Source: Dicyema japonicum
Taxonomy: Eukaryota; Animalia; Dicyemida
DNA length: 32,770 nt
Assembly: GCA_011109175.1 (NCBI GenBank)
Contig: RDEW01000003.1
Span: 811,951 to 844,720 of the forward strand
Direction: 5' to 3'
The position numbers were made by a program, and so were the translations under genes. A model generated the notes under the pieces. That model worked only from the letters and a program-made list of their open reading frames with translations, had not been told where the DNA came from and did no database searches. The stretch's first letter is position 1; the number at the start of each line of letters is the position of its first letter. This document shows positions 12,770 through 28,129 of the stretch, piece by piece.

Positions 12770-13679
12770 TTCATCGTCACTATTTCCAAAATGCTCGTTC
12801 CATTCATTTTCGTTTAGTCTGTCGTTATAATGGGGATCTTCTTGGTCTTCTTTATCTTTAGTTTCCTACTCTTCCCAGATAAGGTCGCTGCTGTTCCATC
12901 GAGAGCGTTGGAAATGCAGCATTTCTTAAAGGAGCGTTTCACAGTAGACAGTGACACATTATCCCACGACTGTTTAATCATTCTGTTATTGCTTCCAACG
13001 AAGGTGCTTTCATGGCTCCTCCTTTAGTAAACTGCTTCTCGTCTTCTATCATCCAAATACTCCAATTTCCTTTCAATATGTCTCCTAATGGCCTGTTCAA
13101 AAAAACATCAAGTAGTTAAACATCACTTGTTAATCCACCAGGAATAACGGCAACATCAGTGTTGTTGCATTTAAGTTTTATTTTGACGGAGTCCACTGTA
13201 GATGGGTTTTGAAAGAATCCCATACGAGAGTTTCATACTTTTTCTTTCCAGATCTTGATTCCCTCTGCATCCATCCATCCTTTTGGACGATTGAAATTAC
13301 TACACCAGAAGGGAATTATTTTTTTGGTAGAGTTTTTCTCTTAAAAACGACGATCGGCTTCAGCTTTGTATCATCAGCTAAGCAGAAAAGAACAACAGTG
13401 AATCTAGACTTTTCGTGGCCTGTTGTTTACACGAGAACAGTTTTTTCATTTTTGGCAGATAGTTTTCGACGTAGGCATATCAAACCATACCGGAGTTTCA
13501 TTTTATACCATTCACTTCTATAATTAGATTGATCTTTGCAAGAATTTTTTTGTGAAGAGTGTAGCAATTACCATCACATTTAAAGCGATGAATAGGAAGT
13601 TGAATTTCATGACTCGGTGTATGAGTCGAGGTCAACTTTTGATCTAAAAAGGTCGACTTATATACCGGCAAATACGGTA
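12770..13679 (-). mobile_element. pogo/Tc2-type DNA transposon remnant with one TIR
   Basis: ETPVWFDMP; TTGHEKSRFTVVL; PKGWMD; LVWDSFKTHL; VAVIPGGLTS; SFKKCCISNALDG; acidic tail. Terminus TA-CCGTATTTGCCGGTATATAAGTCGAC at 13679 downward. Confidence 0.92.
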
Positions 13680-13732
13680 AGTAGATATAAAATCAAAGAA
13701 CATGGTGAGAGTTTGTAGGTTATACTCTAAGC

Positions 13733-15385
13733 CACGGGTTCTCAACCTTTTTTTACTCGTCGGCCCCTTGACTTTTTTTTCGTCCCCCCTAATATTTAAT
13801 CGATTCCTTAAAACTTTTTTAGAACAGACAATTCTAAGTAAAATTAGTTAACTATCTATAATGAATTCATTGTTAATAATCAAATCAAACAAAAAAAGAA
13901 TAACTCGATGTTAAGTTGGTATCTTAACCTAAATTTATAAAAAAAAATTTAAATACAAATGGGATCCCCGTGACTGATGTTTTTTGGCCAAAGATTCGAT
14001 ATCTGGCTCTATATGTGTTATTTTTAAACGAATATCTCCTCTAGTGGACACATCCAATCTGTTTCGTTCTTTATTTACAATTCGATGTAGAATGCTAAAT
14101 CCGCATTCAACACAGTATGATGTCGGAAAATAGAGTAGCAATTGTGCTATTTTTGTCCACAATTTCGGATAACCTCAGTGTGAAGCACAAGACGGATATA
14201 TGTTTCTTTAGCCTCAGCAAAATTTTCTAAAAAGACGATCATACTTGCTTTAATTTTGTTTATGATTTTAATAAATATATTTATCGTATCATGTAGAATT
14301 GGCGAAAGAGCTTTTGAAACCAAATGTTGTCTATGTAGAACGCAATGTATATGAATCACATTTGGACATATTTTTTTTCAAATATGCCGCAAATCCTTTA
14401 TATTTTCTAACATAGACATTGCACCATCTGTGGCACAAGAAACCAAATTTTCATATGGAATCTTCTTGTCATCCAAAAATAATTTGACTACGGAAAAAAT
14501 AGAAAATCCAGTCATATCAGTTTCCAAATATTTGACGATTAATAAAACTTCTGCAGGAAGAGCATGATTGTCAAAATATCTTAAAGGGTAAGCTTCTAGT
14601 AAGATTAACCTGACATATCCGATTAGAATTGATTGGTTGTCATATGTATGACTTTCGTCAATTTAAAATGAAAAAAATAGTATTTTAAGCTTTTCACATA
14701 AAATATGTCCAACATTATCTGACATTTCGTCAATCCTGCGGCGAATGGAATCATTGCTAATTGTCACGGATTTTAAAATTTCGTCTGGATTTAAACCCAT
14801 CAGATCTGACAGAATCACTGATATAGATGGTTTGATGAGATTTTCACCAGAAACATGGGAACTCTCATTTTTGGCAATAATCATTGCAATTTTATAGTAT
14901 GCAATTAGTCTTCCTAAAAATAATTTAAAATAACAACAACTATTGTTTCTTTCACTACTATTTGTAAAATCAGTGACAATCGTTTTTTGTTTACGAAAAA
15001 ATCCTTTAATTCTTCAAAATACTCAATGGTTTATCAATTTTTATCCAAATGTTTACTCCTAAGATGATCCAACAATTTGGACGGTTTCATTGCATCATTT
15101 GATAACTTGTTACACAGTAAGCAATGTGGTCTATTATCAAAAAAAATTTTCAAATATTCAATTTTATATTGACGAATTTTTAATAGAAGGACGACTCATA
15201 AACGAACAAAAAGCATGCTAATTTTAAAAATTAAAAAAGACAAATGTTTCCACTTTAAAATAAACTAACTTAATTTAAATAGAAAAAAATTAAAATTATT
15301 AAATTTATTTTCGACCCCCTTACGATCGATCTGGATTGATTTTAGACTTCTGGGGGTCAAATCGACCCCAGGTTGAGAACCGCTG
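13733..15385 (-). mobile_element. Buster-family hAT transposon, internally deleted, with both TIRs and TSD
   Basis: TIRs cacgggttctcaacct / aggttgagaaccgctg; perfect 8-bp TSD CTCTAAGC (13725-13732 and 15386-15393) with central TA; HVSGENLIKP, CATDGA, HIHCVLHRQHL, FPTSYCVECGFS. Confidence 0.95.
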
Positions 15386-21779: not shown

Positions 21780-22260
21780 AGACCACGGTAAAACCAAACA
21801 ACTATCACGTGATCCCGATGCGTTCCACCAAAATCCTCATCCTTTCCCGGTGATCCTCCCTCGTGCCCACACAAGCTCGTACTGGGCGGCTGACTGTATT
21901 TGCAGGGCCACCTTTCCGCATGCCGGAGTTTAGTTTGATGAGGGCCCCCCAGAGTAGTTGGTCCGGTTCTATGTCTCCCACAAGTCCACCGCTCCGTGAC
22001 TCTAAAAGACTTCTTTTGTACGTCCTCGATATTCTTGTATTCGTCCATGATAATGAAGGTCCCCACGAAGCACACGCATGCGAGAAGCATGATTCAATGT
22101 ATTGTTTGTAGATATTCATCAAGACCGGGTGGGCACCGGTCTTCCATATTCCTGATAAACATTTCAATACATTGATTTTCTTCTCGCACTTCAGAACAAT
22201 GTTTGCCACGTGTGGTGACAAACATAAGTGCGTATCCACTTATGGGAAAACAAGTAAGAA
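21780..22260 (-). mobile_element. I/Ingi-like LINE post-RT fragment
   Basis: DTHLCLSPHVANIVLKCEKKINVLKCLSG..NIYKQYIES..ACASWGPSLSWTN. Confidence 0.8.
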
Positions 22261-24424: not shown

Positions 24425-25210
24425 TAATGACAAACCCTAGTGTTCCAGTGCAAACAGAGATCTCGAAGTCCTTTTCTATCCAGAGATAGACTGTTCATGT
24501 CGTAGGTGTCCAATTCCTGCATTGACAAGAGGTTGGTAAAAATTTTATGAAGAGTTCGAGGACCCAAACGTGGTCCTTGAGTTCAAAAACCGGGTGAATC
24601 ATAAAATAAGCCACTACAATACAAACCATTTGGTAGGTCTTAACAATCAGAAATCTCACAAGATTCCAATCAGAAGAAAAAAAAGTTTATCGGGGAATTC
24701 GAGGAAGGATAGTGTTTACCTTCTTTAGTAATGTATATATCATGGAGTATCAGTGGCATCACCGAGTGCCATTTACCTATTCTATTTGTTAACAAAACCT
24801 TCTCGGTTATTATACGGAATGAAACAAGTCGATAAGTGTTTTTTGAAAGAATCTTTTAAAATGAAGAGTGCAGGTTAGTTAAATGTTGGAATACAGATTA
24901 AAATTGAGGTTATCTAGAACTCATCAAGTTCGAGCACATCTACGGTACCTTTGGTTCCCCATCGTAAATAACAAGTTTCACAGCAATCACTGTTTTGGAT
25001 TAAATAAAGGAAAAGAGGAATATGATATCTCATTGACCCAAGTAATCATATTTATTTACCATGGACTAATGATAAACTTAAATATATGTTTTATAATATT
25101 CATTATTGAAGAAAACAAAAAGAAATGTTTTGACGATAACTGTTGTGTTATATGTCTATCAAACTCTGACGCCTCCAACTTACATATTAACCTACACTGC
25201 CATCATTAAA
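24425..25210 (+). pseudogene. RPUSD2: RluA-family pseudouridine synthase (RPUSD2-like) pseudogene
   Basis: DKP/SVPV; IGEF..ECHLPILFV..VFFERIF..LVKC; RTHQVRAHLRYLWFPIVN; C-terminal DDNCCVIC..NLHINLH. Contains stops and decayed intron-like segments. Confidence 0.72.
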
Positions 25211-25333
25211 TAATTACTACAGTCTCTCGACTTTTATATTTACTCTGAACCCCCGTTTAACTAATAGAAAGCATTAAACTAATATAATTATAAACTATTT
25301 ATGCACGTTGTATCATCAGAATAAACACATTTG

Positions 25334-26660
25334 TTAATCTATAATCAAAAAAGTAGATAACCTTCTGTCGTTCCCTCTCCCAAATCATAACTAGATTTGG
25401 AGTTAATCCGTTTTTCTCGAGCCATTTTCTTAGCTCGATTTTTACGAATAACATCTACAATGATGTGTAAACAAACCTTCGAATGATGGCTTTGATATTC
25501 CCACAATCTCCGTACCACCTATATTTTAATCAACAACAAACGTCCACTGTTCAGATACTCTATCTTTTCACCATTAAGAGTATCCAAACCTACAACCCTT
25601 ACTCTTTTAGATCTTCTATGTCCAAGGGGTCCTATCTCTGGGATCACTATCCTTCCCCGAATTCCCCGATTAGACAATACTTAAAATATAAAAAACGGAC
25701 AACCTCAATTATTCCACGAAATCTCTTTACCATTTCATCATAGTTTTCTAATTTCGTGAGTTTGATCATTGAATCATTCACTTTACGTCTTCTTTGTTTT
25801 TTATTATATTTTGGCTAAAATGAGCACAAATAAACTCTAATATTTTTCATATCACTCATCTTTATGTCAGTCATGACTTGTGCGTCTTTACAAGAAACAC
25901 TACAGTTAGTTAATTTAATACATTTTCTTATTGGGAATATTCCGAACAGTTGAATGTTCATTAACATCTGAGTGAATTGGCTTATCACAAGACATTGAAC
26001 TTTTCATTATCTTTGGTATAACCATTCTATCATCTGGACTTCCGACATTCCTTATAGAACTCACTAATACAACATAAATATGAATGGAACCTCTGGGGAC
26101 AATAGAGTCATCCTCGATATTTTCCACTATCGTCTCTCTTCCAATATTATCATCCATAGTCTCCACCAGCATAGTATTCGCCCCAGTATTATCTTCTATA
26201 GTCTCCTCTAATAGGGTACCTTTCCTAATATTCTTCTCTGTGTATCTTTCATTTCTTTGGTAATTTATTTTTTCCAAATATGCAGACTTTCTAGGAATTA
26301 AAACATCTTGTAGAGAAGACATCGAAGGTGATAGTATCCTAGTATCCCCACGACTTTCGATTTTGTTAGAAAATAAATTCAACCATTGGATCTAAATATT
26401 ATAAATAAGAATACAAAAGAAGGATCGTTATTTCGGGGATCTATTATTTTATTGGAAGTTTCATCACTGTCGACAGGGGTACTGCAGTAATTGGCGTAAT
26501 GTTTATTAACAAGTTCTTGTTCATCATCAGTAATACCTGTAAATGTGAATAATATTAGTTACTGTCAAGACGTATCAGTTTGTGTCTCCTTGCTAATCTT
26601 CCATTTCTATATTTTTTAACACGCTCACTGTCTCTCATCACAACAGAAAATAATGTCCGC
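25334..26660 (-). pseudogene. 5'-incomplete multi-exon host gene with ten 21-27 nt introns and a CENP-C-like motif, frameshifted by one 26-nt insertion
   Basis: Introns 26607-26628, 26537-26562, 26392-26414, 26064-26090, 25900-25921, 25815-25835, 25680-25703, 25519-25541, 25455-25476 and 25339-25361. With 25645-25670 also removed, the exons total 1068 nt (355 aa plus stop) with no internal stop. Motif RRSKRVRVVGLDTLNGEKIEY at 25555-25617. Confidence 0.8.
26100..26220 (-). repeat. Three degenerate coding tandem repeats of about 42 bp (14 aa)
   Basis: TLLEETIEDNTGAN / TMLVETMDDNIGRE / TIVENIEDDSIVP. Confidence 0.7.
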
Positions 26661-26769
26661 CTAATTTTATTTATTTTATTAATTATTTTTATTTATTTAT
26701 TTGACATTAATTAGTAATTTTTACTAATGAAGACTTGGCTACGGGACGAGTGCTATTCTAATGTTCCCA

Positions 26770-26875: not shown

Positions 26876-26901
26876 TGTGTTGATTTACACACATTTTTTA
26901 G

Positions 26902-26988
26902 CTTGAGGCAGTGCAAACTTCGGACCTTTCAAGATGGCCTCGGCTTCAAATCTTTTGCCGAAATTTCGCTCCTTGCCTTACTTTTTCG
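26902..26988. repeat. Dispersed repeat of about 88 bp, copy 1
   Basis: cttgaggcagtgcaa..cggacctttcaagatgg..tcaaat..gccgaaatttc..ctccttg, closely similar to 27877-27965. Confidence 0.85.
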
Positions 26989-27876: not shown

Positions 27877-27965
27877 CTTGAGGCAGTGCAATCCCCGGAC
27901 CTTTCAAGATGGTCTAGGCCTCAAATATTTGGCCGAAATTTCCCTCCTTGTTTTTCTTTTTTCGT
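27877..27965. repeat. Dispersed repeat of about 88 bp, copy 2
   Basis: Direct repeat of 26902-26988. Confidence 0.85.
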
Positions 27966-28129
27966 GTGGTTCATTTGTTTGCCTTTCGTCGAGATTTTTC
28001 TCAACATTTTAAGATCTTTTCTTGAACGTTTATCTCTAACTAGTCACGTAGCCGATATATTAGGGATAGATTTGTAGTGGGTGAACAATTGAGAAATGAT
28101 AATATGAACTTTCGTGTATTAATCTCAAA

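Follow-up and report, generated by a model that had tools for sequence, protein, structure and literature searches.

The locus on the minus strand at positions 25334 to 26638 of the window (the whole 32,770-nucleotide stretch of DNA analyzed here, from the octopus parasite Dicyema japonicum) raises the question of whether a peptide that resembles the nucleosome-binding motif of CENP-C without its aromatic pair belongs to a working centromere protein. The first-pass annotation had proposed a highly derived CENP-C or KNL2, possibly with altered centromere recognition. We consider it probable that the locus is a young, decaying duplicate of a D. japonicum CENP-C gene; it is probably a pseudogene, or at most a truncated paralogue, and is to be labeled in annotation as a CENP-C-derived pseudogene or truncated paralogue.

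Direct reading of an open frame on the minus strand (25522 to 25680) gives VLSNRGIRGRIVIPEIGPLGHRRSKRVRVVGLDTLNGEKIEYLNSGR, of which residues R22 to Y42 are exactly the core of the CENP-C-like motif, RRSKRVRVVGLDTLNGEKIEY, encoded at 25555 to 25617. The frame, the coordinates, and the splice from which this motif had originally been read were all reproduced. Searched alone with phmmer against 177,635 distinct PDB sequences, the window exon retrieved two sequences at an E value below 10, both of them the chicken CENP-C motif (E = 0.17). A profile (A1) built from eight paralogous Dicyema motif exons and searched against the same sequences gave as its four best matches the rat motif (4X23; E = 8e-4), Mif2 (6QLD), the chicken motif (7BXT), and Mif2 again (7ON1), so that for the core of the motif the phmmer and profile matches were to CENP-C/Mif2 motif peptides only and the profile search that had been suggested supported the identification. 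These four entries, rat, chicken, and yeast, are the CENP-C motif nucleosome structures used for comparison here.

HMMER aligned the Dicyema exons with the motifs of rat, chicken, and yeast without gaps, following the pattern RRSxRxRxxxLxxxxGE(K/R)IxY, and 10 of 23 residues agree with the rat motif. The Dicyema exon profile carries the arginine block RRSxR and the GE(R/K)I.Y block of CENP-C, and exon 6 of the window copy retains both (RRSxR and GEKIEY), whereas Thr-Leu (T34-L35, codons ACT CTT, 25576 to 25581) occupies the canonical Tyr-Trp columns and Gly the Pro column; the original observation of a CENP-C-like motif with TL in place of YW was therefore correct. The likeness also extends into the flanks, where IV(L/I)P...P precedes the motif (IVIPEIGP in Dicyema, IVLPSNTP in the compared sequence) and I.G(I/V)..P follows it on both sides of the comparison. 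To our knowledge, Pfam has no model for the CENP-C motif, and a Pfam search of the exons of the window gene taken singly, including the motif exon and covering SANTA, matched no family. A feature search of the ESM Atlas with the motif exon of a paralogue (L013) gave no usable match, and the 39-residue chicken motif peptide, in a first and uninformative look, found no match in the D. japonicum genome. The PDB matches and the flanking likeness support genuine descent of the exon 6 motif from that of CENP-C.

The structure of the gene was modeled by comparison with paralogues, as greedy open-frame modeling over-extended and misjoined the exons, and the exons of each spliced model were searched separately. 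Eight introns, each of 21 to 26 nt, are predicted in the window gene; introns shorter than 30 nt have been documented in D. japonicum (PMC13644364). Exons 1 to 5 (25704 to 26638, minus strand, with the ATG at 26638) encode 283 residues and are separated by introns 1 to 4 (26562-26537, 26414-26392, 25921-25900, and 25835-25815; 21 to 26 nt), the positions and sequences of which are kept in paralogues. The middle part of the protein is acidic and repeat-like (EETIEDNTG...; EETIEDNTGANTMLVETMDDNIG...). In another copy, L014, this acidic part is expanded into tandem units of ~45 nt (L014:3100-3780; C223:~2.1671-2.1678 Mb). Intron 5 (24 nt, 25680 to 25703) leads to the motif exon, exon 6 (25542 to 25679), which reads (V)LSNRGIRGRIVIPEIGPLGHRRS...YLNSG(R) and was aligned with its counterpart in L010 and compared with those in L014, L021, and L024. 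Between RGIRGRI and VIPE, other copies contain a further intron, of which the window copy and L010 show a precise loss. Intron 6 (23 nt, GT-AG, gtttgttgttgattaaaatatag, 25519 to 25541), also found in L010, L014, and L015, joins the RRSKRVRVVGLDTLNGEKIEY exon to GTEIVGISKP to give ...YLNSGR/GTEIVGISKPSFE; this splice is supported by the homologous YSDFGYGLQIVGITK, which is uninterrupted in L013. Exons 7 to 9 and the stop (GTEIVGISKPSFE / DVIRKNRAKKMAREKRINSKSSYDLGEGTTE / D-stop, 25334 to 25518), with introns 7 and 8 at 25476-25455 and 25361-25339, follow from the splice model and the L010 alignment. DNA comparison places the 3' flank (24751 to 25333) within the duplicated unit, with 77% identity to L014.

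The window copy carries two lesions. The first is a G-to-A change at 25681 that shifts the acceptor of intron 5 by 1 nt, where the only AG close by lies one base further on. In L010, a copy 95% identical to that in the window, the intron ends ...TTTTAG/GTATTG and the frame runs on into VLSNQGIRGRIVIPE...; in the window copy it ends ...TTTTAAG/TATTG. Because the acceptor has moved by 1 nt, the motif exon is no longer in frame under conserved splicing, and translation reads YCLIGEFGEG before a stop 10 codons after the junction and ahead of the motif, so that no intact frame runs from the start codon through the motif. Contigs from four public DNA runs contain no alternative letter at 25681. The frameshift comes from this acceptor change and not from a 26-nt repeat: the stretch ATCGGGGAATTCGGGGAAGGATAGTG (25645 to 25670), which has an inverted copy on the plus strand at 24689 to 24714, was considered as a frameshifting insertion and rejected, as it belongs to the gene's own coding sequence (NRGIRGRIV), which all paralogues conserve and whose counterpart in L024 is HPNIQGKI(I)V.

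The second lesion removes the C terminus. A deletion of ~335 nt lies between the intron 8 acceptor and the final two codons (junction at 25338 to 25339 on the minus strand, its exact position made ambiguous by a TAG microhomology); it took with it all of the cupin-like exons, leaving no C-terminal cupin dimerization domain. The deletion is shared with L010, and both copies end ...GEGTTED-stop; the deleted sequence is present in L014, L015, L017, L019, L020, and L023. An independent assembly of public reads yielded a contig (X1, record 1) that spans 25000 to 25415 without a gap and thus crosses the junction, which rules out an assembly artifact as the source of the deletion. The absence of a cupin after the motif, remarked on from the outset, is thus real for the window copy.

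The substitution pattern of the window copy resembles that of a sequence evolving neutrally. Between the window copy and L010, pN/pS is 1.12 for exons 1 to 5 (18 nonsynonymous and 4 synonymous differences) and 0.94 for exons 6 to 9 (12 nonsynonymous and 4 synonymous), values near 1 that are based on just 38 differences and that can also be obtained from strong positive selection mixed with constraint. In the introns, 4 of 184 sites (2.2%) are different, near the 2.6% of exons 1 to 5, and the comparison gives no sign of purifying selection on the window copy. A disabling lesion and a neutral substitution pattern thus occur together at this locus, which probably yields no product at all or else a 293-residue N-terminal fragment that lacks the motif. 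The original proposal of a working, highly derived CENP-C does not hold here: the locus is one of ~25 copies, its cupin has been deleted, its motif is out of frame, and its pN/pS is ~1. Contigs of the public DNA runs also differ from the assembly within the motif exon, where every run has A to T at 25588 and two of them lack 1 nt at 25605; there are further variants at 25625 and at 25634, the last matching L010, and these differences may be alleles or cross-mapping paralogues.

The alternative that survives best, possible though unlikely, is that the window gene and L010 constitute a functional, fast-evolving, cupin-less CENP-C paralogue. Its product would be monomeric and would bind nucleosomes through the arginine block as a specialized (e.g., germline or stage-specific) or competing centromere factor, with an alternative splice keeping the window copy in frame. 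L010 (on C322) has a fully open frame of ~374 codons through the motif to the stop that it shares with the window copy, so that a cupin-less CENP-C-like protein may be made there; both copies retain an intact arginine block and GEKIEY, and specialized Cenp-C paralogues are known in Drosophila (10.1101/134817). Routes that would restore the frame of the window copy also exist, namely a 38-nt intron that would start at GTGGAA, an unusual donor, an additional GC-rich 29-nt GT-AG intron (25675-25647), and a 68-nt intron to a downstream AG, but all three require splice choices that no paralogue uses, the conserved acceptor itself having been destroyed. Also against such a paralogue are the pN/pS of ~1 with many radical changes within the motif exon and the visible decay of the remainder of the family, and after ~3 to 6% divergence the frame of L010 could well have stayed open by chance. 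A second, degenerate tandem motif exon with following exons lies 3' of the stop in L010 (L010:3970-4130 on C322), beside an N.

The family to which the window copy belongs is dispersed through the genome. The D. japonicum assembly has been described as 67.5 Mb in 377 scaffolds with 49% repeats (PMC6736024), and the version examined here contains 67,542,437 bases in 377 contigs. Within it, the motif exon found 16 matches, the profile found 22, and the 2-kb gene with its flanks found ~25 dispersed DNA loci. Four CENP-C lineages could be told apart: L013 on C363 (RQSNRVRVVGLDFFNGERIKY), L024 on C1 (RRSSRIRISGRDGYIGEKIVF), L021/L022 on C344/C35 (RRSSRTRISGRDNCVGERIVY), and the window's own family, family C. 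The loci on C363, C1, and C344/C35 are candidates for the working CENP-C genes. Between L021 and L022, pN/pS is 0.12, and this pair is under purifying selection. Within family C, RRSxRVRVVGLD and NGEKIEY are conserved, and free variation is seen at the pair of "aromatic" positions (TL, SL, IP, TV, RA, and others). Other than the window copy, all of the family C copies examined except L010 contain stops or frameshifts; in L014, for instance, the motif is in frame only if an alternative acceptor (35 nt) is used, and the loss of 1 nt brings a stop right after the motif.

Duplication of centromere protein genes has precedents, in the Cenp-C and CenH3 genes of Drosophila (10.1101/134817) and in Caenorhabditis, where duplicates of centromere proteins are short-lived (PMC9577544). 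As in those animals, usually single-copy centromere proteins have been duplicated in Dicyema into divergent paralogues, some of which are decaying; unlike them, Dicyema has, in 67.5 Mb of genome, four lineages and ~25 loci that for the most part look like pseudogenes, and none of its copies keeps the aromatic pair (Tyr-Trp).

The dispersal of ~25 copies of a ~2-kb unit with short shared flanks might also be explained by a CENP-C-derived gene spread by a mobile element, which we think quite improbable. The copies have in common ~90 nt upstream and ~600 nt downstream of the gene, about half of the genome is repetitive, as noted above, and a 15-nt inverted pair (I6) brackets the window copy. This inverted pair is absent from the other copies, and for that reason a transposon with terminal inverted repeats was rejected; no transposase, long terminal repeat, or target-site duplication was seen, and the introns are retained in the copies, so that retroposition is not the general route. 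The homology between the window copy and L010 (92 to 95%) extends to at least window position 27998, and that duplication therefore exceeds the ~2-kb family unit. Upstream of the gene, a short repeated segment occurs at window positions 27877-27998 and 26901-26986 and is found twice near L010 as well. Elsewhere in the window, open frames at 12800-15200 and 21800-22240 (minus strand) look by eye like remnants of transposase or reverse transcriptase genes; a Pfam search of these transposon-looking frames gave nothing at an E value of 0.01 or below.

We regard the young, decaying CENP-C duplicate as the better description, and the cupin-like exons of its paralogues bear on the type of gene from which it descends. 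In L013, L024, and L021/L022, the motif is followed by three short exons that are by eye colinear with the CENP-C cupin; in L024 they read GELVIKPNSKKP... / ILTVHSGFVGVSLNNSPIRKLKIGDYFVVPP / NWYSISNLRNYKARIFFILIKPNN-stop. The fuller paralogue that was to be looked for thus exists in the form of these more canonical, cupin-bearing copies. The best Pfam family for a 34-residue exon of L021 is CENP-C_C (PF11699, E = 0.015), and other C-terminal exons of the paralogues match Cupin_2 at E values of 0.04 to 0.19 when searched exon-wise. Profile searches of the PDB with the cupin-like exons (A2, A3, and A4) returned no CENP-C matches, and the single exon L021:4034-4135 matched only cNMP-binding beta-barrels there (E ~0.2); the Pfam matches weakly support a cupin-like character for the C-terminal exons. 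A single weak whole-genome match to PF11699 on C318 (E = 0.017) was set aside as by eye unrelated to CENP-C and probably repeat-derived.

A KNL2/M18BP1-type licensing factor, as the other half of the original proposal had it, would resemble the window gene in combining a CENP-C-type motif (CENPC-k) with a protein that lacks a cupin. This identity appears very improbable. Cupin-like exons follow the motif in all three of the other lineages, and the older family C copies (L014, L015, L017, L019, L020, and L023) keep remnants of them, so that the cupin was ancestrally present and its absence here reflects a recent deletion in a CENP-C-type gene; moreover, an exon-wise search for SANTA (PF09133) over the genome found none at an E value of 1 or below, a weak negative to which the exons of the window gene add no match. 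The family is accordingly better described as CENP-C-like than as KNL2-like: descent from CENP-C, to which the profile and the cupin-like exons of the paralogues point, stands, and KNL2 identity is unlikely. Chance resemblance of an unrelated basic peptide, for which the single-exon E value of just 0.17 and the lack of a Pfam model leave some room, is scarcely credible in view of the profile E value and its four CENP-C/Mif2 matches, the likeness on both sides of the motif, and the cupin-like exons that come after it in paralogues, in the order expected for CENP-C.

What the loss of the aromatic pair would mean can be judged from solved complexes, in which the acidic patch of H2A-H2B receives the motif arginines and the Tyr/Trp residues hold the hydrophobic C-terminal tail of CENP-A, and in which mutation of R, Y, or W lowers binding (PMC3865007, PMC4830207). 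By analogy with these complexes, the motif arginines of the intact Dicyema paralogues should still dock on the acidic patch, a contact made plausible by their retention of the arginine block and GE(K/R)I.Y. The aromatic grip on the CENP-A tail, in its canonical form, would be impossible for any Dicyema lineage: profile matches to all lineages contain the YW pair at none of their loci, and the corresponding residues are FF on C363, GY on C1, and NC on C344/C35. A precedent for a CENP-C motif without aromatic residues is the putative CENP-C of a shark, in which the motif position lacks tryptophans, although a second RxxxxPxxWW-type region may compensate there (PMC4830207). Since the loss of YW is common to all Dicyema lineages, any altered centromere recognition would be a property of the lineage. 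The suggestion of a derived CENP-C with altered recognition may therefore be transferred from the window copy, which it does not fit, to the lineage as a whole. Our literature search found no paper that treats dicyemids together with CENP-C.

The partner of the aromatic pair, CENP-A's C-terminal tail, was sought among the H3-like genes of the genome, as the first-pass annotation had suggested. A survey found canonical H3 and H3.3-like genes, a family of short H3-like genes, and one divergent full-length H3. The short genes are histone-fold open frames of ~90 residues, the loop 1 of which is longer by two residues, as in CENP-A; they end in ...AQRLR(F)-stop and so have no C-terminal tail; among the H3-like genes examined, the CENP-A-type lengthened loop 1 occurs only in them. 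They are located at C223:2075645-2078914 (L036), C46:32882-36139 (L037), and C168:~221.4-221.8 kb (L038/L044), on C146 (L051), and also on C3 and C373. The family is partly decayed, with the ATG out of frame in two copies and stops in three, and one copy contains an internal 52-residue duplication. It is a candidate for the present or former centromeric histone. The search for the tail thus produced tail-less frames with a lengthened loop 1; co-variation of the centromeric histone tail with the CENP-C motif, in a family that is itself partly decayed, is something we can only hypothesize. The divergent full-length H3 (L035, C5:31774-32154) contains one 21-nt intron, reads MKVRNTARKSTGGK..., and ends RIRGNSSNN; its loop 1 is of canonical length, so that it is not obviously CENP-A-like.

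A bolder reading, and a decidedly unlikely one, is that Dicyema has rebuilt the interface between CENP-C and the centromeric nucleosome and that the cupin-less form of the window copy and L010 is a live, monomeric CENP-C variant. The Trp-containing hook is gone from all CENP-C lineages, and the CENP-A-type H3-like genes offer no tail for it to grip; the amplification and turnover of both the CENP-C and the H3-like families would be the signature expected of centromere drive, and the window/L010 form would bind any nucleosome via the acidic patch and modulate kinetochore assembly. The Tyr-Trp pair is one of the two motif contacts in the solved complexes cited above. Dicyema, whose CENP-C lineages all lack this pair and whose CENP-C-like and H3-like genes are both amplified and decaying, offers a natural test of whether centromeres can be specified through docking on the acidic patch by itself or through some new contact.

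Two minor observations concern the CENP-C-like and H3-like families together. H3-variant genes and CENP-C-like copies occur on the same contigs, 20 to 90 kb apart (at 2.077 and 2.168 Mb on C223, 34 and 55 kb on C46, and 32 and 8 kb on C5), an arrangement that could reflect chance or co-duplication. Both amplified families also carry the element GGCG(G/C) some 25 to 30 nt 5' of the ATG, inside a conserved AT-rich leader (window positions 26655-26665, and upstream of the H3-like frames in L036 to L038), which is possibly a shared core-promoter element.
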